This document shows, in pieces, positions 4,974 to 64,000 of a stretch of 64,000 nt of DNA. This DNA is from Paramoeba atlantica. Taxonomy: Eukaryota > Protista > Discosea. The stretch spans positions 248,001 through 312,000 of the forward strand of contig CDRNVI010000004.1 in assembly GCA_977017575.1 (NCBI GenBank), given 5' to 3'. Both the position numbers and the translations under genes were made by a program. How positions within the stretch are numbered: the first letter of the stretch is position 1; each line of letters begins with the position of its first letter. The notes beneath the pieces were generated by a model that was given only the letters and a program-made list of their open reading frames with translations, made no database searches and was not told the origin of the DNA.

Positions 4974-7900
4974 CAAATAAAGGCGATAATCGTATGGACT
5001 AAACTGCAAATTCAATCATTCTTAATATTTCATATATTTCGTCTGAACTATTACCTGACTTTCCGAGTTACGACTATATACGTTGACAACGCCTGCGTAG
5101 CGAAAACTACGAAATTCAGATGAAAAGCTGCCTCCAGTGACTTTACATTCTTTGCTTAATAAAATTCACAAGCTTAAGAACACACTTTTTATAAAGAACA
5201 CCTACCAAGAATATAAAGAATGAATAATGAGTAAACTATTAAAACAAGCAAAATTCACTCCAAACAAACAAAATTCACTCCTTGGTTCCTCCTATTGTAA
5301 AGCATATTGAGAAAAGTACAGACATTAACAGCAGCAATACTCTCCGTGAGCTCTTTATCTGAAATAAGTTAATATCAACTTAGATCATGAGATGATATCA
5401 ACGTAGATGACGGGGAATTTTATCAAATCGAATAGAGGTTGTAAGTGAAAGGAAATTCTGATTAGTGTTCAAGTCCTCCGAGCCACTGAATTGGTGGAAA
5501 GTATTGTCGGAGTTGCGTGGCAATTGTGTACGCGTTCATCTTCTCTATTTCAAGTTGGAACGCTTCTTTGACATCCTTCACGTTTTGTTGTGACCGTTGT
5601 GCGAGCGAGACAATGAGAGTTTTCGTGTTGTTGTGCAACTGTCCTAATTCGGTCATTGCCAAGCAGCTGAAACTTTCTTTCGGTATGCCCCCTTGTACAA
5701 CGTATTTTTTGTGCTTGCGCTCAAGGGCATTTTGGATTAACTGCTCGACGGAGGTTTTGGCATAGCTCGGGGCACAACTGTGAACTACGGTGACATCGTA
5801 GAGAATTTCTCCGAGATGGGACCACATGATACCGAGATCAGGGCCTGATCGCATACGTCTTGCTCTGCATGGGTGATGTTCAGAGAGCTCTTCGGATATG
5901 GTGGCCTTACATTTGGTGCAGAAGAATGATGAATGTACTCGAGGTTCTATAACATGGGGCACCCCTGCTTTGGCACACAATTCACCTAGGAAACAGACTA
6001 ATCGTGTGTGCTTCTTCGTTGCATTTATCCCACAGCATTGTGTACATCCAGGAATGTGCTGGAAGATGGTATCAGAAGAATATTCTGTCAGGCATCCCGG
6101 GCATACCACACTCTTAGGCATATTTTCTGGCACTATTCCCAGGCGCATCATTATACAGAAACGGAAGAGGTACGGATTGATGTAGTTGCTGGTTGATTGC
6201 AGGTGGTGAAATGATGCGGATCCTCGCTCCATTAGTTCTTTGAGGCGCATGTCCTTTCTCAGCTCGGTTGCAAATCGTTTTTGTTCAGATCGTATTGCTT
6301 TCATGACTAATCGCTTGGAAGTATCATTCTTCTGGCTGTCACGTTCGTTCAGAGCCCTGTTTCGCTTGGATCCCGCTATGACCACCGGAGCGTTATTGGT
6401 TTTGGATTGCTCTTCAATGGCTTTGCGAGACGCTTGGAAAAAGTGCTTTTGCTTCAAACATGACGGAGTAAGTCCGAGTCCGCCGAGATATTGCGGAAGT
6501 GTGGCGAGTTTTGCAGTAGGGCCCGTTGCATTAAACCAATGCTGAATACTGCCTACTTCCGCGTCGAACTGCTGGGCGATTTCAAGGGATGCTTCGGGCT
6601 TGTGTACTCGGAGGTGATAGTCTTGACGGGGGATGGCGCACCGATTCAGAATTGCGAGGGATAGGTTGCTCGGTCCCATGAGTCGAAGACGGCGAAAGAG
6701 ACACTTGTGTTTGTCCATCTTTTTCTTTAGGCATTCACTTACCATCTCGTCCTGTCCGATATATGCACCTAGAATTTTCACTGTTTCTTGCGGGAAGGCT
6801 ACCCCCATCGCTTGCAGAGTTTGGGGCGTCCATGGAGTGTCTGTTTTCTTGAACCATTCGCATTTCTGGAAGTTCATTTCCAGTCCCAGAAGTCGTGAAG
6901 ATTCGTGCAGGTGTAGAAAGGCGGTCTGCAAGGATAGGGGATTTGTTGATGACAAGGTTATGTCGTCCATGTACGCTCGAACCGTTACATCTGGAAAGGA
7001 CTCTTCGATTTCTTTGAGCGAATCCTGTATCAGGGCACAGAAGTATAGTGACGAAAGCGCTGAGCCCTGTCGAACGCCAGAAGTGCTCTTCACGATCGAA
7101 TGGAGCGAGTTATTGGCAAAGAAGAGCAGATCAGACGAGTCCCCGTACTCAAGATTAAAAATCCGCATGAAAGGTTTGAAGATGCCGTCTTTCTTGAGTG
7201 CTTCGAAGATTGCTTGACGCGTGGGGGTATTGTAGGCATTCTTATAATCGATCGCCAAGATGGCGTGTCCCTTGTCATATTCATCGAGCACCTCGTGAAC
7301 AATTCCCTCGCACGCATTCTTTTGGAGGATCCCTCTTTGGACAGGCTGGAAAAATTTCTTCAGTTTCTCTTCGTTCCTGTTTAGAAGGATCGAGCCACAT
7401 ACTTTCAATAGAGTCTCCCCAATTGCAATCGGTCGTATTCCGTTCTGCGGTTTGTTGATGGCCATTAGTCGACATCGTGTCAGTCTGTCACGCACCGACG
7501 ATGCGATCTCCCCGTTCACTACATCGCGTAACATATGGCAGAGCGCGGTGCTGGATTCCTCGTCATCCGCAAGTAGGCGCAACATGGCTTCACTCAATCC
7601 CGTAGGGCCCGGGGAAGCTCCCGGAGCCAGTTTCTCTATCGCGGCCCGAAGTTCGTGTTTTTCGATGATTCCTGTTCGGGGGTCTACGTCCGTCTGAGCT
7701 TGTGGGCGCTCTCCATCGGGATGTTAGTTAGTTAGTTATTATCCAGCCATTTGTCTGCGAACAGATGTGGCTGCCTCACTTCACGCGTAGGTCGCGTTGC
7801 CGGTGCTCCACGCGGGGAGTAATCTTCTAGCACGAGAGCGGTTGGCTCAATCATATAAGAAGACACCGGACTTTAGACAGACATTACCCTAGTTATTTGA

Positions 7901-9866: not shown

Positions 9867-10255
9867 CAAATAAAGGCGATAATCGTATGGACTAAACTGC
9901 AAATTCAATCATTCTTAATATTTCATATATTTCGTCTGAACTATTACCTGACTTTCCGAGTTACGACTATATACGTTGACAACGCCTGCGTAGCGAAAAC
10001 TACGAAATTCAGATGAAAAGCTGCCTCCAGTGACTTTACATTCTTTGCTTAATAAAATTCACAAGCTTAAGAACACACTTTTTATAAAGAACACACTTTT
10101 TATAAAGAACACCTACCAAGAATATAAAGAATGAATAATGAGTAAACTATTAAAACAAGCAAAATTCACTCCAAACAAACAAAATTCACTCCTTGGTTCC
10201 TCCTATTGTAAAGCATATTGAGAAAAGTACAGACATTAACAGCAGCAATACTCTC

Positions 10256-10330
10256 TTAACAAAAAGAAGGGTCTTAACAAAAAGAAGGGTCTTAACAAAA
10301 AGAAGGGTCTTAACAAAAGTCTTAACAAAA
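10256..10330 (-). repeat. 18-bp tandem repeat tail (TTAAGACCCTTCTTTTTG)x3 plus a short unit
   Basis: Read directly; related to the 60504-60897 unit; repeated at 19213-19287. Confidence 0.9.
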
Positions 10331-10436
10331 GCCCGTGGAGCGCATATATTATATACGCGCCGATTACTATCAAATGTTCACATTCTAATAAACTAATATC
10401 CCTTTCTTTTCTTAAGAAGTATTTGAGATGACAAGC

Positions 10437-18823: not shown

Positions 18824-19212
18824 CAAATAAAGGCGATAATCGTATGGACTAAACTGCAAATTCAATCATTCTTAATATTTCATATATTTCGTCTGAACTA
18901 TTACCTGACTTTCCGAGTTACGACTATATACGTTGACAACGCCTGCGTAGCGAAAACTACGAAATTCAGATGAAAAGCTGCCTCCAGTGACTTTACATTC
19001 TTTGCTTAATAAAATTCACAAGCTTAAGAACACACTTTTTATAAAGAACACACTTTTTATAAAGAACACCTACCAAGAATATAAAGAATGAATAATGAGT
19101 AAACTATTAAAACAAGCAAAATTCACTCCAAACAAACAAAATTCACTCCTTGGTTCCTCCTATTGTAAAGCATATTGAGAAAAGTACAGACATTAACAGC
19201 AGCAATACTCTC

Positions 19213-22200
19213 TTAACAAAAAGAAGGGTCTTAACAAAAAGAAGGGTCTTAACAAAAAGAAGGGTCTTAACAAAAGTCTTAACAAAAGCCCGTGGAGCGC
19301 ATATATTATATACGCGCCGATTACTATCAAATGTTCACATTCTAATAAACTAATATCCCTTTCTTTTCTTAAGAAGTATTTGAGATGACAAGCTTAAAAA
19401 CTCGTCTCAGTGTATTGGTCGTGAGCTAGAAACTGGCGGAGTTGAGCGTGGAGGATACTTCCTGCCTGTTCCTGGTGGAGTAGCGTAAATGTTTCCATTA
19501 CGCTGTGTCTCTCTAGCCCGCAACGGTCCGCAATAGCCCACAGGAGATTTCGAGTGGCGTTGTGCATGGAACCGCAGGACAGAACAGGGATACATTCAAA
19601 GCATTCCTTGTTTATCATGCCACTGTCAACATAGCGTACACGCTTGCGCTTTATCGCTTCGTTCATGAGGAATGTCGTATTGTGTTTGATATTCGAGGGA
19701 GCCAGTTCGTGAACTACTGTGAGGTCGTAGTATTTCTCTCCTGAAGCCCATTGAATTGCGAGGTCGGGGCCCGTGCGACGCAGAGTACTTCCAACACATG
19801 TCCTGGCATGTTCCGTTTTGTTTTCAGGGTGGATCGTGGCTGCGCACGCAGAGCACTCATAGTAACTGAACTGACGAGGTTCACGTTCACACGGCAAGCC
19901 AGCTCGGAGGCATAGCTCGTAAAGGTAGCGAACAAGGGCATGATGCTTCGTAGTTACATTGTGTCCTGCACATTTGACGCATCCAGGTATGTGGGTTAGC
20001 GCTTCCGAGGAGCTTAGCAGCTTTTTGCATCCCGGGCATAGCAACGAGTTTGGCAGTTGTGGGTGGCTTATTTTTAGTCGTGACATGATGTTTAGCGTGT
20101 AGATGTGCGAAGGAATGATTTTGCGATTCCCGATAGGCCATTCATAGCTCCCTTTCTTGCTGCAAGCTTTAATCGTCGGAGCCCACTCCTTGTTTTTGAG
20201 AAGATTTGTCTGGATTTCTGTGGCTCTTTTGGTCTCCGTCACCACCTCGTCCTCAGGTGTCTTATGTGATTCCTCCAACGTCCCTGCAGGTGCTGGCGGT
20301 TCCATGCGCTGTGCCATCCGAGCTGAAAAGGATTTTTGATGCTCAAAAACGGCATGTCGCGATGAAGTGTACGCAGCGTTCCGCAAGGGTTCTGTTGCTG
20401 GAATACCCAATCCACCTTTCTTTAAAGGTAGTCTTGCTATCATTTCTTGCTCTGGACTCAGAGGTCCCAACCACGATGTGACGACATTCTTGATCTCGTG
20501 GTCAAATTTTTGCGCTAGCTCAAGTGAGGCCTCTGGTTTATGTACCCGTACGTGATAACGGTGCCGAACGTTTACGCTGCGCGATAGCAAAAGCAGGGAC
20601 GCGTTGTTGGCACCCATCTTTTTAAGACGTCTGAATATCGTATGGTGTTTTTCCAGCGTTCGGATTAATTCGGATCCTATGCGCTGTTCCTCCCCAACGA
20701 ATGCACCCAGTACTTTAATGACTTCGCTCTCTGTACGCACACCTTCTTCTTTGAGTGTTGATGGAATGGGGGCGTCGCTTTTCCCTTCAAACCAGATGCA
20801 TTTTTCGTTATTGAGTTGAATTCCTTCAGTGAGAAGCAGGGTTTGTAACCGGTGGTATGCCGCCTCGACCTCTTTTCCACTAGGAGAAGTGAGGCTGACG
20901 TCGTCGACGTAAGCTAGAACTTTGACGTTTGGAAATTCCTGCGCTATGGTCTCCAACATGGGTTGCAGAAAGCAGCAAAAGAAAACCGTCGACAGTGGGG
21001 AGCCTTGACGAACACCTGCATTGCTCTCAAGTACGCTGTACAATGTACCGGTATGTCCGTAAAAAAGAAGTTCTGAGGCTTCTTTGTATTGCGCCGCAAA
21101 CACTCTTTGAAAGGGCTTCATTGTGGCGAAACCAAAGACTGCTTTTGCTATTTCGTCACGGGATGGAACGTTGAATGCGTTGCGAAAGTCGAGCGATAAA
21201 ATGACGTGGCCTTGCTCATATAGATCACTGAGATTATGTATTACGCTTTCACAACCGGATTTGGATAACACTCCTTGTTGAAGGGGCTGGAATAAGGTAG
21301 CGAGCGATGATTCGTGTCGAAGTAATAGGACGAGTTCAGCGAGTTTTAGTAGTGTTTCTCCCATGGCGATTGGACGAACTCCTCCATTTGGCTTTGGAAT
21401 AGCCACCAATCGAGCTCTTTTCAATCGTCGCATAATGTCGGTAGGCAGCACCCCGTTGACCAGATCCACTAGCATGTGGCACAAGCTTCTGCAGCATATT
21501 TCGTCGTCGATTAGCAGGCGGAGAATGACGTCATTCATCCCGGTCGGACCTGGAGATGAACCTTTGGCCAACCGGCGACCAGCAAGTCGAAGTTCCTCGG
21601 GCGATATGCAAGCCATTGCCGGCGCATCGGGTGGCAACGTGAAGGTGCAAGGATGCTTTGGATGTAGTTTCTCCAATTTTTCCAGAATTTCCTGATCTGA
21701 CGCACTTGTTGTGATCATTTCCCGGTCTAAAATTTTAGTAGCCCTGGATGTCGCACCCTCCTTTACTAGCCGCATTGCTTTCTTAATGGCTCGATTGTCA
21801 CCGTTTTCTTCGTGGGTCTTGTTGGTATCGTTGCGTGATCGAAAAGGGCGATTCCTGCGTCTTCTTTCTGATTCGGCCCGTACGGTCGCCAATGAGAACT
21901 TGACTGCCGATAGCAACTTATGCCATATCTGGTTTTTGAGCTTTTGCGGACTATCCGCGTATTCACGTATGAGGTCTCTGAAAATTGAAATGACACATGG
22001 AATGAATTCGGTTTCAATGGTTTTTGTCGTGGGAAGTGGTTCAAAGTCAAGGTCTTCTTGCGTGTGGCTGGCATTGCTTGCATGAAATACTGGTTCATCC
22101 GATGTTTCATTTTCACCTTCCCACACTAAACGGAAAATTCGTACATTAGGTGGCGGTGGTAAGGTTCCATTGTACTTTTTCCCTCGACAGTGTCCATGTA

Positions 22201-27325: not shown

Positions 27326-27371
27326 AAAAGAAAGAAAAGCAAAGTAGTAAAAATTCAACAAGGTACAGAAA

Positions 27372-36632: not shown

Positions 36633-37700
36633 TCACTCGTCATGCATAGCATGACCTTCAGACTCACTCGAAACGAAATCATCGCCGCTGGTATAGTCTG
36701 ATGGACAGCTGCTCAAACTCACACTGTCGTCGAAGTCATCTACGTCCGAGCCGTAGTACTCAAGAAAACACCCCAAGAGGTTGGAAAGTCGAGTTTGCCA
36801 AGCAGTCTCTCGCCCGTTGTGAACTTCCCCCAACTTCACACACTGAAGGGCCACATTTCGCATCAATTCCAAGGAAGAAGCCCCAAAGTTGTAATGCTGC
36901 TTCCTCACCCAGTCTTTAATGATGCGATGCGACCCTTCAGCGGTGTTAGTGTGGTAGCCTTGGGAGTTCACAAACTCCACGCTATGATTCACAGCGTGGT
37001 GGCGACAAAAGTCCCCCAGAGTGGAATACGCCCCCCAACAGTCACTGACAACCACAGCCCGTGCACTCGTCAAGTGCGGCAGGATGAAGTTATGCAGCGT
37101 TTCCGTGTCTCGACGCTTGACTAACTTCCAATGGGTTCTTCCCATTTCTTGTCCACGTATCTCCGTGACGGTGGCAAACCACCATCCCCTTTTCCGCTGC
37201 CGCCTCCCACGCTGATACTTTCTCTTTCCAATGAACGTTTCGTCCACTTGGATGCGAGAAAACTCGTATTGCTCGGACTGCTCTTGGGAAAGCGCAGCAT
37301 TGGCCGCGGAGTGTAACACTTCCTGGACTGTTTTTCTACCCACCCCTCGGCTGTGGCAGATTTGGCCAGTACAAAGCTGATTCGCAATGTCTGCCCAAAG
37401 AAGTAAAAGGATGGTGGGAGTTAGATGGCTCCGCAAAGAAATGTATGGCTCAAACTTTCCCATCTTTATTCGACAGGGGTTCCGCATTCCAGGCTCCTTA
37501 AACATGCAAATCATATAATTCTTCCCCGGTACGGACGCCATCTTTTCCGTTCCATGCTTTCGGCACGATGGCGGAGTCAAAAAACCATGGCAGCTCATCC
37601 AGCTTTCGACATCCGCGCCAAGAGGAATGTCTTGCATACTGCGCCAACGCTTGACACAGTTAAAAGCAGGGCATCCGTTACAAAGCGGGCGCAACGGCAC
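36633..37700 (-). CDS. Merlin/IS1595-family DDE transposase, ~335-355 aa
   Basis: VDETFIGKRKY.RGR, VVSDCWGAY, VNHS..F, HTNTAEG; N-terminal Cys/His finger; start uncertain (GTG 37700 or a downstream ATG). Confidence 0.9.
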   Translation of the reverse strand: MPLRPLCNGCPAFNCVKRWRSMQDIPLGADVESWMSCHGFLTPPSCRKHGTEKMASVPGKNYMICMFKEPGMRNPCRIKMGKFEPYISLRSHLTPTILLLLWADIANQLCTGQICHSRGVGRKTVQEVLHSAANAALSQEQSEQYEFSRIQVDETFIGKRKYQRGRRQRKRGWWFATVTEIRGQEMGRTHWKLVKRRDTETLHNFILPHLTSARAVVVSDCWGAYSTLGDFCRHHAVNHSVEFVNSQGYHTNTAEGSHRIIKDWVRKQHYNFGASSLELMRNVALQCVKLGEVHNGRETAWQTRLSNLLGCFLEYYGSDVDDFDDSVSLSSCPSDYTSGDDFVSSESEGHAMHDE

Positions 37701-52241: not shown

Positions 52242-54959
52242 CTAAAAAATTCTGCTTATTGGGTCCGCTGGATTTAGTTTCGTAGAAATATAATGAGCTT
52301 GAATACATATTCCTTTATTCTTTAAACTCTGTAAAATGCTTTTCAATTCTTTCGCTATGCCATCAGACTTGCATATTTTCCGATTCAACGCTGCTCGACA
52401 AGACGTATTATCAATCCAAAGCTGAACGCAAGTCCCTTGCTCGAAATATTTTTGGAATTCTTCGAGGGCGAATCGCACCGCCGCCGCTTCTGATTTGTTA
52501 ACTTCGTAGGTCCATTCTGCTGGCCAAGGTGCGCCCAAAATCTTAACCTCTCCGCTATCCATGTACAGAATTGCTCCCCATCCTTTTGAGGAGGCGTCTG
52601 TAAAGAGTTTATGACGCGGAGGTGCAGTGGCGGGGTGAGGGGGTGCTCTTATCGGCACGTTTTTAATCAAGTCGTCACGCCATTGAGCTAAGATCACACG
52701 AGTTTTCATGGGAAGATCCACGATTTTGTCCTTTGCAAAAGGATGTCGGTTCAAGTAATTAATACGTCGTTGTACTATTTTTATCGCAAAGTGATATTGC
52801 GGGATTACCACACCAAGTATCGAAGAGCAGTACAGTAGACGCCCCACCGCCGCCTCCAGCTCTAAGAAAGTGAGTCTCGAAAAAGTATCCCGTTTCAATT
52901 TGCTCACAACCTTCGGTCCCAAGCAGACCCGGCTTGATGCGTGATCAAATTTCACTCCGTTGAACACGTATTGTTTCGTCGGAGGAACGTCCTGATCTTT
53001 AAATCGAGCTCCTGCCACTCGCGCACGCGAGTCAATAAAATAAACATACTCGTCTGCATGTTTTCTAGATCCGGAAAAACGAACTCCATCTATATAGATA
53101 TCAGTAGAACCGTGTTGATACGAGTGGGATTTTGAGCAATAATCTTTATTTCCTGCCAACGCTGCTGTCATGCAATGCATAATTTCAGGCGCACATCTGT
53201 GGCCCATGGGTAAAACATTCATTTCGTATAATTGCCCATCTTCTGCACGAAACCGAAACTTTGCTCGGGATCGTAAGGGTAAGCCAACCTGGTAAAAACC
53301 ACACATTAGATCACGTTTTACCCCCACCTCAGCATTTACTGCGTATAAATAACGAGAAGGGTGTAGGAGAGGAACAGCTGGTTCGTAGTCCTTTAGGCGT
53401 AAATTGTCTGATCGTGTCCATGAAATAAAACGTCTTCTGTCTTTGCCCGCGTCGTCTTTTTCAAGGACAGTGAACGGAACCATATATTGCATGGTCGGGC
53501 GTCGTTTGGCTTCTTCGGTAGATACCTTCGATATGACTTTAGACCGAATCAATGCTGGAATGTCTCCTGGAGCCAATGCCGGTTTAATGCAAGGAGCGGA
53601 CTCAGCTTTCTCGGGCAACTTGGTGAGTTCATCAAGAACGTACGTTAGCCTATCATTCTGTTGTTCCGTTAGCCACTTCCGTAATTTTTGAACATTCAAC
53701 GTCGGAATATTATCCTTTGCATGCAAGGGGATATGGTAGTCGTCGGTTTTAGCTAATTTGAAACTGCGCCTTGGACATAAAATTGAATACGATTTAAGGA
53801 AAGGAACCTGTTCGTAAAACTCCTGAACCATCACATTATCGATGCACCGGGGAGAAGTACTGACACCTTCTGAGTCCCTAACGCTCTTGCCGTAGTTATT
53901 TGGTTGGCGTTGTACCGCAGTAGACTTTCTACGTTCAAGTGCTTTGAGAGATTCATTACTTCCGATAAGTTGAGGTGGCCTTCTACTATTTCCTGAAATA
54001 GAAAGGTGATGGCTCCTCTCTTGATTGAGTGCGTGCCATATCCGTCGCCTAGGACGTCTCGAATATGGAGATCCATCTCCTGAACTGTCGCGGTGCTCAT
54101 TCGTTGCCCTGGTCGCAGGCTGCTTACATACTGAGCTATTTGGTTTGTGCCCGGACCCGTGATGATCGCGTACATGTACGGTCGGTACGGATTTAGACGA
54201 GTGGTCTTCGTGAAACGTCCCCAGTAGATTATTATTTCGTTCGAATTTACACTCAGAAATTGCTCCCTTCTTAGCTCGGCCGTTTCGGTCCAGCGTGACG
54301 CGGCTTTCCAGCATAGCAGGACCGTCATTGCTTGTGTTATCGACAGGCGTGTGCACAATTTTTGCAACATGGGAGGTGTTATCGGTTGCATTTGACGTTG
54401 TGGTTCCGTGCCCCCCTGGGCTTGAATCGCTTTTGTGAACAACTTCAACGGATTGCATTCCATCCCCATCAACGTGAAAACCGTGTGAAGAGCGCGAGCA
54501 TAATTGAGGCGAGTTGACGGCGCGACGCGTAGAGTCTGGAGATACAAAATGGCGGTTGCTGAATTCATCTCTCGGTGCTTCACGCGACAAAATTCGTTTA
54601 CGTTTTTCCATAGGCGTGTTCTGTTGTTCCAAGTCGACTTTGCCCACATCGGCTGAATCGCTTCGGTCAGCTGGACGGAGTCCGGATCGTCCGGATTTAT
54701 CCTCAGAATTGCCTGAGTAATGTTTTGAACTTGGTCGTGGGATACATCGCGACTGTGTTCTCGTTTTAGTCCTCTGACTGTTTGCGAATCTGTGCGGTGC
54801 GCGACACGTGTTTGAGGTAAGACCCTTAGTGGAATCAGTCGTGTGCAAGGATGCATTTTGGTCTGTATTGGGATACGAGTAGTTTTGGGCACACTCCGGG
54901 CACTGATTTTGGGAAATTTGGGAGAGCACCTCACGAACGAGTTTTGCGAACTTTTCCAC
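52242..54959 (-). CDS. YR2 RT/RNase H ORF
   Basis: KRDLMCGFYQV, PMGHRCAP, YIDG, FTDAS, SEAAA, IDN, NPADPISR. Confidence 0.85.
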   Translation of the reverse strand: MEKFAKLVREVLSQISQNQCPECAQNYSYPNTDQNASLHTTDSTKGLTSNTCRAPHRFANSQRTKTRTQSRCIPRPSSKHYSGNSEDKSGRSGLRPADRSDSADVGKVDLEQQNTPMEKRKRILSREAPRDEFSNRHFVSPDSTRRAVNSPQLCSRSSHGFHVDGDGMQSVEVVHKSDSSPGGHGTTTSNATDNTSHVAKIVHTPVDNTSNDGPAMLESRVTLDRNGRAKKGAISECKFERNNNLLGTFHEDHSSKSVPTVHVRDHHGSGHKPNSSVCKQPATRATNEHRDSSGDGSPYSRRPRRRIWHALNQERSHHLSISGNSRRPPQLIGSNESLKALERRKSTAVQRQPNNYGKSVRDSEGVSTSPRCIDNVMVQEFYEQVPFLKSYSILCPRRSFKLAKTDDYHIPLHAKDNIPTLNVQKLRKWLTEQQNDRLTYVLDELTKLPEKAESAPCIKPALAPGDIPALIRSKVISKVSTEEAKRRPTMQYMVPFTVLEKDDAGKDRRRFISWTRSDNLRLKDYEPAVPLLHPSRYLYAVNAEVGVKRDLMCGFYQVGLPLRSRAKFRFRAEDGQLYEMNVLPMGHRCAPEIMHCMTAALAGNKDYCSKSHSYQHGSTDIYIDGVRFSGSRKHADEYVYFIDSRARVAGARFKDQDVPPTKQYVFNGVKFDHASSRVCLGPKVVSKLKRDTFSRLTFLELEAAVGRLLYCSSILGVVIPQYHFAIKIVQRRINYLNRHPFAKDKIVDLPMKTRVILAQWRDDLIKNVPIRAPPHPATAPPRHKLFTDASSKGWGAILYMDSGEVKILGAPWPAEWTYEVNKSEAAAVRFALEEFQKYFEQGTCVQLWIDNTSCRAALNRKICKSDGIAKELKSILQSLKNKGICIQAHYISTKLNPADPISRIF

Positions 54960-55006
54960 GATCTCTTCAATCCAATGACACGAGTAGTTTTTGGGGTGGG
55001 GAACAA
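53831..55006 (-). CDS. YR2 tyrosine recombinase
   Basis: WKAASR, HSIKRG, SKH, LLRY; overlaps the RT ORF in another frame. Confidence 0.9.
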   Translation of the reverse strand: MFPTPKTTRVIGLKRSWKSSQNSFVRCSPKFPKISARSVPKTTRIPIQTKMHPCTRLIPLRVLPQTRVAHRTDSQTVRGLKREHSRDVSHDQVQNITQAILRINPDDPDSVQLTEAIQPMWAKSTWNNRTRLWKNVNEFCRVKHREMNSATAILYLQTLRVAPSTRLNYARALHTVFTLMGMECNPLKLFTKAIQAQGGTEPQRQMQPITPPMLQKLCTRLSITQAMTVLLCWKAASRWTETAELRREQFLSVNSNEIIIYWGRFTKTTRLNPYRPYMYAIITGPGTNQIAQYVSSLRPGQRMSTATVQEMDLHIRDVLGDGYGTHSIKRGAITFLFQEIVEGHLNLSEVMNLSKHLNVESLLRYNANQITTARALGTQKVSVLLPGASIM

Positions 55007-55009
55007 TCC

Positions 55010-55565
55010 CTAGTGGATTGTCCGTCTTTCGCTGCGCACCATTTGGTGGGAACGCGCAGCGCCACTCGCCACCCCCCTCTGAAAAATCTGAGTCAAAAGA
55101 GGACAGTTAGCACGTATATGACCTGGTTTACGACAATTATAGCAAACAGGGTTGGCACGGCGAGAAATACGAGTTTGCTTGAGCTGTTCCTCAAGCATCA
55201 TTTTCCCAAATACGTCATTGGGGTCTTCCACTTGATGGAGGCGTTGTTGAACACGATCGACTGGCGCTCCAGCAGCTGCCCAATAGTGCGTGCGTAACTC
55301 CTCGATCAGCATGGTAGCGATAGCAACGAAATCTTCTGTCCAGGTGCCTAGCTCGCGCGCCGCATAAATCCATTTGGTGAGGATAGTAAACAAGCGCTCT
55401 CGGATTGGGGGAGGGTTGAAGCGAACACCTAATTGAGGAGCATCGCGCAATTCTCTGATCAATTCACGGGGCTTGAAGTCATCTTCAGAGTATATATACG
55501 ATTTCCATGTCAAGGGGAAGATTACTGAAAATGCCTTGGGGTCTTCTACGCCCACTTCAGATTGG
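55010..55565 (-). pseudogene. YR2 gag C-half
   Basis: RELIRELRDAP as in YR1 gag; CYNCRKPGHIRANC knuckle. Confidence 0.88.
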
Positions 55566-55572
55566 ATAGGAT

Positions 55573-57734
55573 TTTTTTTTTTTTTTTTAAAAACGAGCAA
55601 AATATATAACTAGCAAATACATGCTTTCCCATCTTACCCACTTCCCCTTACCAATCTTACCAGCTTTCCAGGGAGGGTAAGGTCTCCCTCGGCTAGGAGG
55701 GCCAGACTTTCCCCGAACCATTCGCGCGTTCCGGACCGGGTCTTTCGACCTCTCCCAGCTTGCCTTGGTAACCCTTCTCTTGTTGTACGAGAGGGCGCAA
55801 GCAATGGGCCTGTGCCGACAGCGGCACGGTCGCGGAGCATGATGCTGGCCGACGGGGAGGAACAAAGTTCCCTACCCATGTCCTACCTCACTTGGAGTAC
55901 CTAGCCCTGGCGGACTAGGCGTGAGCATAGACCTTGCCGGCATCGACCAGCATCCGGACCAGCTGTTCGGGTTCCGGCTGAGCGGCCCATCTTGCACATC
56001 CGTCATCGTGCTATTGCTCGATTAAAGGGGGCAAGGGGTCCACAGCCGGCAGGCGCGTAATCATCATGCGCGCCTGGCAACGCATCAATGTTACGTTCAT
56101 GTCGGTCACGAGACGGAGCGTAGAGGCCTCGTCTGTCAAGATACCGTTGGACGCTTTTGCCCTTCGTTCTCCAACCTTCCGGAGAACGGCTAAAGCACTG
56201 GCACTCCAAGAGCCATAGCTCTCGACCACCATAGCTGTGAAATCGCTTCCGGCATCTTCAGATTCACGGCGTTGTCGGACTTTCTGCTCTGAGGCATAAT
56301 GCTCTGCGAAGGACCCCGCGGCCACCCAGCTAGCATTTCGGACTGTGTCCGTGTATTTAGATTGCTGGGCGTGAGTGACCGCGAAGTCAAGCACGATAGG
56401 TTTCCAGAGGAAGAGACTCGGAAGGAAGACGTCCCCGGGTCTAGTCAGAGCGCCTCCGGGGCCCCGGTTCCCGAGGCTTTTTTCCCGTTGGGGAGCTAGG
56501 CGTGCGTTACTGCAAGTATCGGCAAAGTGATCGGCCAAGGCGTTGTGACGGCCGATGATACCGTCCCCGTGCTTGCATGTGAGAGCGTGATCGCCGTGTA
56601 TGTCCAATGGGAGTGTGCAGTTCCCCTTGGGACATGTACCTTCTTCCCCGTACACGGGCACACCTAACCACCAGCGGGATAGGATGCGGAATTCTGTGGG
56701 GTTAAAGGCGTGGCCCGTGTCTCTGGAAGGAGTTACGAACGCCCAACTGCTTGCTCCTTTACCACACTGAGAAGCCCAGCGTGCGCGAGTCCGGGCGTCG
56801 GCGTTTTCATATGCGTGCGAGAACTCTGTGGCAGAGATCGCGTAACTTATGTCTTTTTGGCGGGGGACGCTATTACTTGCCCAGTCGGGTGGCTGCGCGT
56901 CAACGCAATCTTCGGATGCGTAAAGGGGGTTTGTATCGTGTGGAAAGTCTTCGGAATGAGGCAATGCGCGGTCACGAGGAAGGGAAGGCGGATTTGCGGG
57001 TTCAAAGGGATGTCTGGTTTCTCCCTCGCGAGATCTCTTGGTGAAGCGAGCTTTGGGGGAGAGTTCTTCACATTTATGGCGCGGGATGGAACGCACGAGT
57101 CCGTTTGAGTCGAGTAGACTGATACCAACTTTCGAATTCACGTCTTCAATCGATTGTAGAAAGCCCTCCACTTCTGAAGCATCCCATGAGTCCGTGGCCG
57201 CCGCGAAAACTACAGAGGAGGCGTAAGCGGAGGATGCGTGCACGGTCGCCGATTTTAAACCGAAACCTCCGTGTCTTTTCAAGCGCTGAATTTGGGCGCG
57301 TGCGGAGGGAGGCAAAGGACATAGAGTGGATTCGACCGCGTGCATTAGGAAGTCGTCGAGCCGCTTGCAGAGGTTCATAACTGATTGCGGGGGCGTCGTT
57401 CGTAGAGCATGTACCAATTTGCAGAATCCAGCACATTGTCGAATTAGCGCCATGGCTACCTGGGGGTCCCGGATTCTGGTTATGGCATCAAGGGCCATTT
57501 CAGCGGGCTCAACCGCGTGTGTCAGCAGATATTCAGTACAGTACTCAGGGGACCCAATTGGGCTTCCTAGGACACTAAAGTTACCGCACACGTTTATTTG
57601 GCGTCGGGTATGTCCGGAAATATGGTTACAACGTTAGCCGAGGCAGGGGGGGTGATTATTTCGCACTTGGACATGTTCAGATATAGGCCCCATCGCGGAC
57701 CTACTCTGGCGATTGTATCCAACCAGTTCCTGAC

Positions 57735-57767: not shown

Positions 57768-59257
57768 AGATAATAGGGGGGGAAGAGTACGAGTTCTAAC
57801 TTTATATATGTATGTACGGTATGACTTTCTCACTTACTTTCCCACTTGCTCAACTTCTTTCCCTCACTTCCCCCCATTTTGAAAACGAGCAAAATATATA
57901 ACTAGCAAATACATGCTTTCCCATCTTACCCACTTCCCCTTACCAATCTTACCAGCTTTCCAGGGAGGGTAAGGTCTCCCTCGGCTAGGAGGGGCAGACT
58001 TTCCCCGAACCATTCGCGCGTTCCGGACCGGGTCTTTCGACCTCTCCCAGCTTGCCTTGGTAACCCTTCTCTTGTTGTACGAGAGGGCGCAAGCAATGGG
58101 CCTGTGCCGACAGCGGCACGGTCGCGGAGCATGATGCTGGCCGACGGGGAGGAACAAAGTTCCCTACCCATGTCCTACCTCACTTGGAGTACCTAGCCCT
58201 GGCGGACTAGGCGTGAGCATAGACCCTGCCGGCATCGACCAGCATCCGGACCAGCTGTTCGGGTTCCGGCTGAGCGGCCCATCTTGCACATCCGTCATCG
58301 TGCTATTGCTCGATTAAAGGGGGCAAGGGGTCCACAGCCGGCAGGCGCGTAATCATCATGCGCGCCTGGCAACGCATCAATGTTACGTTCATGTCGGTCA
58401 CGAGACGGAGCGTAGAGGCCTCGTCTGTCAAGATACCGTTGGACGCTTTTGCCCTTCGTTCTCCAACCTTCCGGAGAACGGCTAAAGCACTGGCACTCCA
58501 AGAGCCATAGCTCTCGACCACCATAGCTGTGAAATCGCTTCCGGCATCTTCAGATTCACGGCGTTGTCGGACTTTCTGCTCTGAGGCATAATGCTCTGCG
58601 AAGGACCCCGCGGCCACCCAGCTAGCATTTCGGACTGTGTCCGTGTATTTAGATTGCTGGGCGTGAGTGACCGCGAAGTCAAGCACGATAGGTTTCCCGA
58701 GGAAGAGACTCGGAAGGAAGACGTCCCCGGGTCTAGTCAGAGCGCCTCCGGGGCCCCGGTTCCCGAGGCTTTTTTCCCGTTGGGGAGCTAGGCGTGCGTT
58801 ACTGCAAGTATCGGCAAAGTGATCGGCCAAGGCGTTGTGACGGCCGATGATACCGTCCCCGTGCTTGCATGTGAGAGCGTGATCGCCGTGTATGTCCAAT
58901 GGGAGTGTGCAGTTCCCCTTGGGACATGTACCTTCTTCCCCGTACACGGGCACACCTAACCACCAGCGGGATAGGATGCGGAATTCTGTGGGGTTAAAGG
59001 CGTGGCCCGTGTCTCTGGAAGGAGTTACGAACGCCCAACTGCTTGCTCCTTTACCACACTGAGAAGCCCAGCGTGCGCGAGTCCGGGCGTCGGCGTTTTC
59101 ATATGCGTGCGAGAACTCTGTGGCAGAGATCGCGTAACTTATGTCTTTTTGGCGGGGGACGCTATTACTTGCCCAGTCGGGTGGCTGCGCGTCAACGCAA
59201 TCTTCGGATGCGTAAAGGGGGTTTGTATCGTGTGGAAAGTCTTCGGAATGAGGCAAT
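57736..59257 (-). mobile_element. 5'-truncated family C copy 2 with longer 3' end and A30 tail
   Basis: ORF remnant 58303-59256; T run 57736-57765. Confidence 0.88.
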
Positions 59258-59805
59258 TTTTTTTTTTTTTTTTTTTTTTTTTTGCATATTCAAATCATTC
59301 TAAATACAAGCGTACAATACCCGCCGGCCATTTATCGGCGTATAAATCCCTTCGAACAATTCTATTTCCGTATGTTTCGTTTCCCTCTTCTTGAATCGTT
59401 TACTTCCATACATGTATGAATACGGTTTTTTTTTTCTTAATAAAAACACAGGTCTTAATAAAAACAAAGGTCTTAACAAAAACAAAGATCATCTAATCCA
59501 TCCGGTTTTAGGTTGTAGTTTGTTTGCTCGTTGCTTTTTTTTGAGGTATTATTTACAGATTTTTAGGGAATAATTTACCGCATGATTGTTTTGGACTTTA
59601 GGCGTTGTTGTTGCTGTTGGAATTGACGTGGACTTGTGCATATATATATACCATATGTATATTGCATAAAAACGAATCTCTCACTATTATTATTTTGCGG
59701 TATGTTCTTTTAGTTGCAACTTTACGCAGAGAAAATAAGCGGTCTTGACACGGGTTCTTTTTGCGAACTTTATTTTTCAATGGCTGAGGCCTCCTATGTT
59801 CTTTT
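59258..59805 (-). other. AT-rich poly(A)-tailed retroposed segment of unknown origin
   Basis: Ends ..TATGC(A)n; holds 18-bp repeat variants at ~59437-59488; inside the ataggat TSD. Confidence 0.55.
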
Positions 59806-60416: not shown

Positions 60417-60503
60417 GTCGTCTGTTGAAGAGAAATGCTGTGAGAAGTGGACATGACAATAATCGTTTAACGAAAAAAAAAATAAGTCAACAAGGTACAG
60501 AAT
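60417..60503 (-). other. 5' end of family D: SL remnant, UTR, first 13 codons
   Basis: MSTSHSISLQQTT continues into LAHLDQKE at 41210 through core TCT. Confidence 0.82.
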
Positions 60504-60897
60504 GGTCTTCAAAAAAACAAAGGTCTTCAAAAAAACAAAGGTCTTCAAAAAAACAAAGGTCTTCAAAAAAACAAAGGTCTTCAAAAAAAAAACAAAGGTC
60601 TTCAAAAAAACAAAGGTCTTCAAAAAAACAAAGGTCTTCAAAAAAACAAAGGTCTTCAAAAAAACAAAGGTCTTCAAAAAAACAAAGGTCTTCAAAAAAA
60701 CAAGTCTTCAAAAAAACAAAGGTCTTCAAAAAAACAAAGGTCTTCAAAAAAACAAAGGTCTTCAAAAAAACAAAGGTCTTCAAAAAAACAAAGGTCTTCA
60801 AAAAAACAAAGGTCTTCAAAAAAACAAAGGTCTTCAAAAAAAAAACAAAGGTCTTCAAAAAAACAAAGGTCTTCAAAAAAACTAAGGTCTTCAAAAA
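60504..60897. repeat. 18-bp minisatellite (GGTCTTCAAAAAAACAAA), ~21-22 units
   Basis: Read directly; a few units vary in A-run length. Confidence 0.95.
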
Positions 60898-61279
60898 GAA
60901 ATCCACGCCGAGGGGCTCCCTGGAAACATATACACTGATAACATGTATGAATAAATGAACAACTATGAATAGCTCAATCGTAATTCAAAATGACACAACA
61001 TATCATTCATTCATTTCACACGCACAAAGATGGAAAAGAAACAAGCCTGCATAAAACAACACAATGAAATCAGCGTCTTCTTTCTCACACATAATGAACA
61101 AGAATAAATAAAATGAAACCAATTCCTAAATCATGTAATATCTTTCTTCATAAAGCCATTCAAAGAATTCAACTGCTTTAGTATCCTCACCACCTATCCA
61201 TGAAAAGAAATTAAGGTACCTGGCCATTTCAATCAAACTTACAGTATTTGAAACAAATCCACAACAAACTCCTTTACTT

Positions 61280-61830
61280 ACGAACGGGCATCCCGTCCGC
61301 CAACTCCGCGAACCAGCCCGGGTTGGTGGGCGGGCGCAATAAAAAGGTTAGAGAATACCAAACTAAATAAATGAAATCTCTAAACAAAACAAACAAATCA
61401 TATCTCATAATATAAATATTATGTGCCCCCAAGGGCCATTATATCAATCATCCTAAATTTCTAAACGTACACTTATATAAACAAAACAAACAAATCATAT
61501 CTCATAATATAAATATTATGTGCCCCGAAGGGCCATTATATCAATCATCCTAAATTTCTAAACGTATACTTATACAATGTCACTCTGTTAACGGGGTTCC
61601 CCCCCACCGGAACCCTCGGCCAAATGGCTGGGGGCTCGGTGGGTGGGCACAAAACTTTAAACGTAACAAAATAACAACCTAACAAGAATATAACAAACGA
61701 GTAAACACCCCCCTCCATGCAATTAGAGAATACTACATCATAATTTGAGAAAATTATGTGCCCCGAAGGGCCAGCAGGCAAATATATAGCCGCCCCTCGG
61801 CTAAATTTTTCGAAAACCAAGGCGTGAGGA
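61280..61830 (-). mobile_element. ORF-less remnants of split direct repeats from other YR families
   Basis: G-rich spacers (61321, 61625) followed by the ATYATGTGCCCCGWAGGGCCA motif seen in YR1/YR2 repeat A; ~97-bp tandem duplication at 61381/61478. Confidence 0.55.
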
Positions 61831-61912
61831 TAAAGTTTGTCAACCGATTAACATCCATAACCTTCCAAAATTATAGGGACAACCTCCAAACCCCAGGACC
61901 CCGTCCGCTCTC

Positions 61913-62336
61913 TTTTTTTTTTTTTTTTTTTTTCACATGTTGTAGCCCAAAACTAGTAATTCAACCTGCCTTAAGTTATTTATGATTCTGACAATAATAA
62001 TAAAAAAGGAAGCAATCCACGCCCAATCCATCCGCGCGTTCCGGACCGGGTCTTTCGACCTCACCACGGCCTGACTTGTTGACCCTTCCCTTGTTATATG
62101 GGAGGGCGCAGGCGCGGGCCTGTGTCGACAGCGACACGGTCGCGAAACAGGATGCTGGTCGACGGGGAGGAGATTCACTTCCCGTGTACTACCTCACTTG
62201 GGGTACCTAGCCCTCGCGGGCTAGGCGTGAGCATAGACTCTGTCGACCCGACCAACATCCAGGCCAGAAGTTTTCCTTACTCTTCTTTGCCATACCCCAC
62301 AAGTGCAGGGCCTGTGTTCGCCGAGGAACTCTTCTC
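61913..62336 (-). mobile_element. Short 3' fragment of a diverged family C relative, A21 tail
   Basis: Homologous structured RNA 62033-62260, different flanks, possible ORF end ..GYGKEE*. Confidence 0.75.
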
Positions 62337-64000
62337 TTTTTTTTTTTTTTTTTTTCTTTTTTTCTTGTCTTTGTTTTTTTTCTTTTTTTCTTGTCTTTGT
62401 TTTTTTTGCAAATAATTGGGGGGAATAGTATTGAGTCTAACTTTTTATGTATGGAGTCCAACACTTTGTTTTTTTTTATATAACTAGCAAATACATGCTT
62501 TCCCATCTTACCCACTTCCCCTTACCAATCTTACCAGCTTTCCAGGGAGGGTAAGGTCTCCCTCGGCTAGGAGGGGCAGACTTTCCCCGAACCATTCGCG
62601 CGTTCCGGACCGGGTCTTTCGACCTCTCCCAGCTTGCCTTGGTAACCCTTCTCTTGTTGTACGAGAGGGCGCAAGCAATGGGCCTGTGCCGACAGCGGCA
62701 CGGTCGCGGAGCATGATGCTGGCCGACGGGGAGGAACAAAGTTCCCTACCCATGTCCTACCTCACTTGGAGTACCTAGCCCTGGCGGACTAGGCGTGAGC
62801 ATAGACCCTGCCGGCATCGACCAGCATCCGGACCAGCTGTTCGGGTTCCGGCTGAGCGGCCCATCTTGCACATCCGTCATCGTGCTATTGCTCGATTAAA
62901 GGGGGCAAGGGGTCCACAGCCGGCAGGCGCGTAATCATCATGCGCGCCTGGCAACGCATCAATGTTACGTTCATGTCGGTCACGAGACGGAGCGTAGAGG
63001 CCTCGTCTGTCAAGATACCGTTGGACGCTTTTGCCCTTCGTTCTCCAACCTTCCGGAGAACGGCTAAAGCACTGGCACTCCAAGAGCCATAGCTCTCGAC
63101 CACCATAGCTGTGAAATCGCTTCCGGCATCTTCAGATTCACGGCGTTGTCGGACTTTCTGCTCTGAGGCATAATGCTCTGCGAAGGACCCCGCGGCCACC
63201 CAGCTAGCATTTCGGACTGTGTCCGTGTATTTAGATTGCTGGGCGTGAGTGACCGCGAAGTCAAGCACGATAGGTTTCCCGAGGAAGAGACTCGGAAGGA
63301 AGACGTCCCCGGGTCTAGTCAGAGCGCCTCCGGGGCCCCGGTTCCCGAGGCTTTTTTCCCGTTGGGGAGCTAGGCGTGCGTTACTGCAAGTATCGGCAAA
63401 GTGATCGGCCAAGGCGTTGTGACGGCCGATGATACCGTCCCCGTGCTTGCATGTGAGAGCGTGATCGCCGTGTATGTCCAATGGGAGTGTGCAGTTCCCC
63501 TTGGGACATGTACCTTCTTCCCCGTACACGGGCACACCTAACCACCAGCGGGATAGGATGCGGAATTCTGTGGGGTTAAAGGCGTGGCCCGTGTCTCTGG
63601 AAGGAGTTACGAACGCCCAACTGCTTGCTCCTTTACCACACTGAGAAGCCCAGCGTGCGCGAGTCCGGGCGTCGGCGTTTTCATATGCGTGCGAGAACTC
63701 TGTGGCAGAGATCGCGTAACTTATGTCTTTTTGGCGGGGGACGCTATTACTTGCCCAGTCGGGTGGCTGCGCGTCAACGCAATCTTCGGATGCGTAAAGG
63801 GGGTTTGTATCGTGTGGAAAGTCTTCGGAATGAGGCAATGCGCTGTCACGAGGAAGGGAAGGCGGATTTGCGGGTTCAAAGGGATGTCTGGTTTCTCCCT
63901 CGCGAGATCTCTTGGTGAAGCGAGCTTTGGGGGAGAGTTCTTCACATTTATGGCGCGGGATGGAACGCACGAGTCCGTTTGAGTCGAGTAGACTGATACC
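62337..64000 (-). mobile_element. Family C copy 3 (runs off window) followed by a diverged 3' tip and A-rich tails
   Basis: ORF 62885->64000 matches 56011-57130; 62408-62470 resembles 57766-57810. Confidence 0.88.

Follow-up and report, generated by a model that had tools for sequence, protein, structure and literature searches.

A structured RNA module of about 235 nt was found in the 3′ untranslated region (UTR) of family C retroelements in the 64,000-nt stretch of DNA analysed here (hereinafter referred to as the window). On the sense strand, the module forms two domains of several helices each; the outer helix that closes them is weaker and has less support. Compensatory substitutions maintain the helices of the module across five sequence types. 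Its host is probably a poly(A)-tailed non-LTR retrotransposon of the type encoding a restriction-like endonuclease (RLE). We infer that the module acts in cis as a recognition RNA for target-primed reverse transcription, similar to that of R2 elements, and consider this reading somewhat better than an even bet.

The preliminary description of this DNA had compared two copies of the module; a BLAST search of both segments against the window gave four, all on the minus strand, comprising three copies of one sequence type (A-type) and one of another (B-type). The copies and the elements around them are listed below.

55572-55588, minus strand: poly(A) of 17 A, ending A-type copy 1 at an early polyadenylation site
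55589-55712, minus strand: variable 3′ tail of the A-type UTR, from the module to the poly(A)
55713-55965, minus strand: A-type module copy 1, core 55723-55955 (covariance model R1, 266 bits)
56011-57591, minus strand: ORF of the family C host element, 5′-truncated, with the end of the reverse transcriptase (RT), a CCHC motif and a PD-(D/E)xK-like region
58005-58257, minus strand: A-type module copy, core 58015-58247 (R1, 270 bits)
61811-61866, minus strand: remnant of a D-type module (its first ~50 nt), AT-rich, just past the poly(A) of the B-type element
61913-61933, minus strand: poly(A) of 21 A, ending the B-type element
61934-62022, minus strand: variable tail of the B-type UTR, pyrimidine- and AT-rich
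62023-62270, minus strand: B-type module copy, core 62033-62260 (R1, 296 bits)
62587-62839, minus strand: A-type module copy, core 62597-62829 (R1, 270 bits)

The three A-type copies were mutually 99.6-100% identical by BLAST, and the B-type copy matched them with 82-83% identity over about 235 nt (E about 1e-62). The A-type copy at 58015-58247 lies within a 1.38-kb repeat that is 99.7% identical to 55585-56965, and the copy at 62597-62829 lies within a repeat (62477-64000) matching 55603-57126. Outside the core of about 235 nt, the identity between A- and B-type sequences collapsed on both sides in pairwise alignment, in agreement with the earlier observation that the conserved helices are embedded in unrelated flanks. 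The tail of the A-type UTR was 46-52% identical to B-type tails, which corresponds to the random level. For the B-type copy, the host element is strongly 5′-truncated, starting at about 62340.

In the tails of the A-type UTR (55589-55712) and of a homologous locus, L014 (5464-5640), a common small hairpin (CUCCUAGC...GGGAG) was observed right after the module, followed by purine-rich GGAAAG/GGUAAG repeats, whereas B-type tails are pyrimidine- and AT-rich instead. Tails consisting of A-runs broken by CAAAGACAAG, not plain poly(A), were present in two different lineages (window 62341-62476, minus strand, and L005:5190-5280). In addition, the sequence following the poly(A) of the B-type element (GCGGACGGGGTCCTGGGG...) was common to window 61811-61913 and L005:5281-5376 at 94% identity; the match, aligned from window 61907 to 61813, is followed by approximately 595 nt of L005 that are missing from the window. 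This common sequence points to a possible shared insertion site about 45 nt upstream of a D-type module, or to a segmental duplication.

The entire window is composed of retroelements arranged head-to-tail on the minus strand. Directly downstream of the poly(A) of A-type copy 1 lies another element (52242-55600, minus strand), whose gag-like ORF includes a CCHC zinc knuckle and whose pol ORF encodes an RT-RNase H domain of LTR/YR type; the family C copy was inserted at or next to it. An ORF for an IS1595/ISXO2-like DDE transposase was found amid the retroelements, both in the window (36633-37700, minus strand) and in L002 (1060-2292). The window also contained an 18-bp minisatellite of about 29 units (TCTTCAAAAAAACAAAGG, plus strand; 60426-60954), and short arrays related to it were located at 10236-10333, 19193-19290, and 59417-59514. 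Further, a complete spliced-leader-like sequence of 39-40 nt (...GATACAGTTTCTGTACCTTGTTG) was identified in L002 (about 5780-5830), downstream of the module and directly after poly(A), and it matches a remnant at window 27356-27371. A spliced-leader sequence such as that of the remnant is typical of Euglenozoa, and the host organism was taken to be a euglenozoan protist. The spliced-leader-like string was not found in a literature search.

The position of the module in the 3′ UTR of family C elements, as originally proposed, was confirmed: it lies between the ORF and the poly(A) of a non-LTR retrotransposon, and in each A-type copy it starts 56 nt past the stop codon of the ORF. Over the C-terminal 526 residues of P0001, a 920-aa protein with an RVT_1 domain, the ORF at 56011-57591 shows 99% identity; the best match of P0001 in the PDB was R2Bm, the R2 protein of Bombyx (8gh6; E 4.6e-5, RT region). 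Invariant motifs in the C-terminal 300 residues of P0001 (C..C..H...C, RH, R-E, RPxDV, LDFAVT, and QQxKY) are read as a CCHC knuckle and a putative PD-(D/E)xK restriction-like endonuclease of the R2/CRE kind. A phmmer search of the C-terminal domain against the PDB found nothing, and a search of the protein atlas found only unnamed clusters; the AlphaFold model of the domain (pLDDT 44.7) was too poor for testing the endonuclease fold. From these motifs and the arrangement of ORF, module, and poly(A), the host is likely an RLE-type, poly(A)-tailed non-LTR retrotransposon with the module in its 3′ UTR.

Homologues of the ORF (P0002-P0015; 43-78% identity) were all encoded in one ENA assembly, and nine further module copies were recovered from the homologue loci, bringing the number of copies examined to 13. 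All module copies originate from that one genome assembly, which is apparently the window's own genome. They fall into five sequence types with one common two-domain fold. B-type copies were present behind the P0002, P0003, P0004, P0006, and P0007 lineages, and the B-type copy of the window is 96% identical to those behind P0002, P0004, P0006, and P0007. An A-like variant (L001:6305-6538) and a diverged type behind P0008 (L014:5218-5463; 179 bits) were also detected. The most diverged type, D, is AT-rich and scored 55.7 bits (L005:5324-5558; E 9.5e-14, or 4.1e-16 when searched over a 501-nt subsequence). It lies in non-coding AT-rich sequence, whereas the other 12 of the 13 copies follow RT-RLE-type ORFs and start 14-100 nt past their stop codons.

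The module is separated from the poly(A) by a variable stretch of 95-260 nt. Full-length tails contain a C-run and then TTATTnATnGC at the end, and several copies stop earlier at alternative poly(A) sites; in these, the last ~150 nt of the full-length UTR are missing, but the module is complete. The module was the most repeated part of the element, with a word depth 10-100 times that of the ORF (contigs of four sequencing runs, probably DNA), and this peak fits a combination of 5′ truncation and sharing of the module among families. A miniature retro-copy, consisting of the last ~20 nt of a module, ~30 nt of tail, and poly(A), was observed in L004 (about 5330-5400); it is apparently a drastically 5′-truncated copy that was inserted into the poly(A) of another element. 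No diverged module copy was detected in the other retroelement families of the window using a broader covariance model with filters off, and the module was absent from the same-genome paralogues L003, L007, and L015 even with filters off. In metagenome relatives (L013, L017, and L018; 32-40% protein identity), no module was found within the 3′ flank, which spanned only 200-240 nt. An exact-pattern scan for the conserved core motif matched five metagenome contigs, but none was confirmed by the covariance model and the matches were attributed to chance. The module sequence was not found in the single RNA-labelled sequencing run.

A two-domain structure of about 230 nt kept by covariation had been proposed from the comparison of two copies, and it held up with nine more copies and five types. 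All helices listed at that time were recovered by RNAalifold on a MAFFT alignment, with the compensatory changes as described. The helices compensated between A- and B-type sequences include GUGCCG/CGGCAC vs GUGUCG/CGACAC, GCUUGC/GCAAGC vs GCCUG/CAGGC, UCUC/GAGA vs UCCC/GGGA, and CCCA/UGGG vs CCGCG/CGUGG. The elements described as invariant, GGUC-GAAA-GACC and GACCG/CGGUC, are so between the A and B types, but their invariance does not extend to the more diverged types: the GAAA hairpin reads GGCC-GAAA-GACC in L014 and is absent from the D-type.

Single minus-strand sequences folded more stably than their shuffles (z = -3.7 and -4.4; 0 of 200 shuffles were as stable), and the B-type fold reached -113.3 kcal/mol (z -4.35). 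For the analysis of covariation, 12 distinct sequences were placed in a model-fitted alignment, in which the D-type, too, was aligned by fitting to the model. The 84 pairs in 11 helices were 96.9% paired in this alignment, and 32 of them showed changes on both sides, values reached by none of 500 shuffles; since the copies belong to one assembly and several share descent, the independent compensatory events are fewer than such cell counts suggest. The collection of homologues, which had been put forward as a check on the structure, thus left the covariation in place. When the 3′ partners were slid by 1-3 columns, pairing fell to 33-43%. MAFFT and RNAalifold gave the same two-domain architecture with nine and then with twelve sequences, 22 of 76 pairs having changes on both sides in the latter, and minimum free energy folds of the L014 and D copies, each computed alone, recovered the same domains.

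Relative to the B-type reference, 14 pairs were altered in the A-type, 13 of which were kept, and 17 of the 24 altered pairs were kept in L014. In the D-type, 33 of 40 altered pairs were kept (82%), 24 of them by double changes, compared with a mean of 25% and a maximum of 49% under random placement of the substitutions. Across types, the random placement null kept 20-25% on average and never more than 58%.

Paired columns changed less than unpaired columns, and near-invariant single-stranded stretches were present as well (CCAA-GUGAG, CAAG, ACAG, and the CUGU loop). The assignment of the structure to the minus strand, made earlier from mismatches that become G-U pairs, was upheld by 100 G-U vs 11 A-C cells, and 96.9% of cells were paired on the sense strand vs 88.0% on the antisense strand. 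This polarity agrees with the orientation of the ORF and the poly(A). The short sequences GGUCG/CGACC recur five to six times in the module (columns 17-22, 119-123, 138-143, 221-225, and 233-237 of alignment A4), so that several alternative pairings beyond the consensus fold are possible. A coding role for the module was rejected, as indels of 1, 2, 4, and 5 nt separate the types; two mechanically predicted ORFs overlapping the module (62098-62415, plus strand, and 62207-62515, minus strand) were without support.

Outside the nested helices, a search for complementary segments that covary revealed a candidate long-range pairing between the following two segments of the B-type copy.

62232-62239, minus strand: junction strand GUCGACAG in domain 1, one half of the candidate pseudoknot or switch
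62113-62128, minus strand: hairpin 8 in domain 2 (GUGUCG-CUGU-CGACAC), whose loop and 3′ strand form the other half

The junction strand GUCGACAG is the complement of CUGU-CGAC, which comprises the loop and the 3′ strand of hairpin 8. This pairing is possible at eight of eight positions in all five types, with five different pairs of 8-mers: GUCGACAG/CUGUCGAC, GCCGGCAG/CUGUCGGC, GCCGACAG/CUGUCGGC, GUCGGCAG/CUGCCGGC, and GUUAACAG/CUGUUGAC. In L014, a change from U to C in the loop of hairpin 8 is matched by a change from A to G in the junction strand, so that hairpin 8 alone is an insufficient explanation; in the same copy, the stem of hairpin 8 is paired at four of six positions and the long-range helix at eight of eight. 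The predicted, covarying 8-bp pairing links the two domains, and it would be a pseudoknot because it crosses the closing helices of both. It competes with half of hairpin 8, so that the module would either make a tertiary contact between loops or have two alternative folds.

Among the B-type carriers, the module was 93-97% identical, compared with 57-74% for the last 600 nt of the ORF (43-70% for the 200 residues encoded there) and 52-83% for the downstream tails. By these identities, the module is much more conserved than the adjacent coding and UTR sequence. The protein closest to that of the A-type element belongs to the P0002 lineage (86% amino acid identity), yet the two carry different module types (83% identity). 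The module tree disagreed with the ORF tree, the L014 module is a mosaic with an A-like domain 2, and similarity between lineages begins exactly at the 5′ edge of the module. The high conservation together with the discordant relations of module and ORF indicates strong constraint as well as exchange as a unit: the module, with part of the tail, has been exchanged between lineages.

The comparison with Rfam, which had been proposed along with the structure, was performed with cmscan. No match among 4,227 families was obtained at gathering scores over the whole window, so there was no plain Rfam match, and at E ≤ 10 the element and two loci gave only chance matches to miRNA and sRNA families. 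The R2 3′ UTR family (R2_retro_el) gave no match in the window at gathering scores and none on the element at E ≤ 10. Likewise, rRNA, SRP, tRNA, snRNA, and other host non-coding RNAs were not matched on the element at E ≤ 10. The initial failure to recognise hammerhead, HDV, or SRP motifs in the sequence was therefore repeated by Rfam, which returned no ribozyme or SRP match at E ≤ 10. A literature search found nothing on the module RNA.

In R2 elements, the protein identifies its template, and places it for target-primed reverse transcription, through the tertiary fold of a 3′ UTR RNA of 210-248 nt (PMC12180492). By analogy, the protein of the family C element may bind the module fold on its own transcript; in this way, the RNA would be chosen as template and brought into place for target-primed reverse transcription, in the manner of R2. 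Copying would then begin in the poly(A) or tail 95-260 nt downstream and proceed through the module. The points fitting a recognition role are the protein class, the size and complexity of the RNA, its strict retention in all copies (including those with early poly(A) sites), and its portability between lineages. The preliminary description had suggested a recognition element for a ribonucleoprotein resembling R2 3′ UTRs. The class of the host protein, the size of the RNA, and the covarying long-range pairing speak for this suggestion; on the other hand, the module does not abut the 3′ end, and it did not match the Rfam model of R2.

The nearly identical module is carried by elements whose proteins are only 43-70% identical, and a conserved host partner would fit this pattern as well as the element's own protein. 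The module could thus be read by host factors instead of the element's RT, serving stability, nuclear export, localisation, translation control, or 3′-end definition of retrotransposon mRNAs in a host that transcribes polycistronically and trans-splices its mRNAs. A single conserved partner would more easily account for 93-97% identity of the module in the face of such divergent proteins, and the internal position of the module in the UTR, away from the priming end, and the use of several poly(A) sites downstream of it would also suit this explanation. We nevertheless consider it rather unlikely, as no host mRNA context was seen, the RT-RLE ORFs directly precede 12 of 13 copies, the module was detected only in this group of related elements and was not found in the window's other retroelement families with filters off, and the closest characterised relatives, the R2 elements, use such an RNA for template recognition. 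Two alternative folds, or dimerisation with template switching, would make the module a conformational switch or an RNA-RNA pairing device, a proposal that appears decidedly improbable to us. Hairpin 8 cannot form together with the pairing of the junction strand, as both need the same bases, and covariation is three-way, involving the junction strand and both strands of hairpin 8; in L014, the long-range helix is fully paired and the hairpin stem is not, as described above; the hexamers are palindromic or nearly so in most types (GUCGAC, GCCGGC, and GUUAAC), while GCCGAC in A2 breaks the palindrome. The swapping of the module between lineages with breakpoints at its 5′ edge, and the head-to-tail arrays of poly(A)-joined pieces in the window, would be in line with template switching. 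Conversely, palindromes may arise simply where the same strand has two pairing partners, and short GGUCG/CGACC repeats in a GC-rich RNA create many chance alternative pairings. A switch would be compatible with recognition by a protein and need not exclude it. More speculatively, the module may represent a new class of catalytic or switching RNA, in which an exchange between hairpin 8 and the 8-bp helix would toggle self-processing or dimerisation and template switching; we regard this as a long shot, which, if true, would explain the passage of the module between lineages with breakpoints at the 5′ edge.

Self-processing had also been raised in the preliminary description, in the form of a new RNA that frees elements from longer transcripts by cleaving itself, and this part of the description did not stand. 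The module does fold into a large and compact structure with multiple junctions; it contains a GNRA-type hairpin (unchanged between the A and B types, absent in D), conserved single-stranded stretches (CCAA-GUGAG, CAAG, and ACAG/CUGU), and long-range pairing. Ribozymes that process co-transcripts are also carried at the 5′ ends of L1Tc/ingi elements of trypanosomatids and of R2 elements (PMC4035085, PMC3383444). Against this, no ribozyme family (HDV-like, hammerhead, twister, twister-sister, hatchet, pistol, or hairpin) was matched even at E ≤ 10, and the position is wrong, since a cut would part the ORF from the 3′ priming end. The genomic copies also argue against self-cleavage: all 13, being reverse transcripts, extend without a break from sequence upstream of the module as far as the poly(A), which makes a self-cleaving ribozyme unlikely. 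No copy starts or ends at a fixed site in the module, the lone internal start (L004) being apparently an ordinary 5′ truncation, and no pile-up of ends inside the module was seen in contigs of sequencing runs that are probably DNA. Only a very slight chance is left, in our estimation, for self-cleavage. The module could finally be a captured piece of a host non-coding RNA, such as a lineage-specific rRNA expansion segment, that is carried without a role. Thousands of dispersed 28S rRNA pieces are reported for the genome of Diplonema papillatum, a related euglenozoan (PMC10161547), and lineage-specific regions of such RNAs would escape Rfam models. Such a passenger without a role is most improbable in view of the missing rRNA, SRP, tRNA, snRNA, or other match at E ≤ 10, and of the slower evolution of the module relative to the adjacent coding sequence; a passenger would decay, whereas substitutions in the module are compensated far above chance. 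The substitution pattern itself excludes a lack of function, even for an RNA that may have originated by capture.

With recognition by the element's own protein as the preferred reading, the module bears on several wider questions. Structured 3′ UTR RNA is the means of template choice by R2-type proteins, and this recognition is now exploited for RNA-templated gene insertion. To our knowledge, well-defined structured recognition RNAs in 3′ UTRs are known almost entirely from animal R2 elements. To these, the module adds an RNA from a distant lineage of eukaryotes (Euglenozoa) that is large, has clear boundaries, and shows strong covariation. As one module is combined with several proteins that are about half identical, it offers a natural experiment on which protein surfaces and RNA features co-vary. 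In addition, the module could enter Rfam as a new family and serve to annotate the retroelement fragments that are very abundant in this genome, and the sharpness with which the 3′ unit is exchanged as a module is informative on how non-LTR lineages recombine.

Compared with known systems, the module most resembles the R2 3′ UTRs (248 nt in R2Bm of Bombyx; pseudoknot, hinge, and stem in avian and testudine elements; Rfam R2_retro_el). Both are structured RNAs of 210-250 nt in the 3′ UTR of a non-LTR element of the single-ORF type that encodes an RT and a C-terminal restriction-like endonuclease, the latter assigned by motifs in the module's host, and in both the fold is conserved more than the sequence and consists of multiple helices with long-range or pseudoknot pairing. 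The R2 RNA, however, adjoins the target junction, whereas a variable tail of 95-260 nt and the poly(A) come after the module; owing to this internal position, the priming site would be remote from the module, unlike in R2. The host elements of the module further differ from R2 in being poly(A)-tailed, and 93-97% sequence identity across lineages is unusually high.

The 3′ stem-loops of stringent-type LINEs, which are shared with partner SINEs (e.g., UnaL2 and UnaSINE1 of eel), are short single hairpins at the extreme 3′ end. They have in common with the module a conserved 3′ UTR structure, a presumed recognition by the RT, and an exchangeable 3′ unit, but the module has a two-domain fold of 235 nt and an internal position. 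The 5′ HDV-like ribozymes of L1Tc/ingi and R2 are about 70-80 nt in length and adopt a nested double pseudoknot. They, too, are structured RNA modules of retrotransposons, whereas the module described here is located in the 3′ UTR, is three times larger, matches no Rfam ribozyme, and has uncut genomic copies. The module RNA is thus undescribed in Rfam, and as a structured 3′ UTR module of an RLE-type retrotransposon it is of a known kind.
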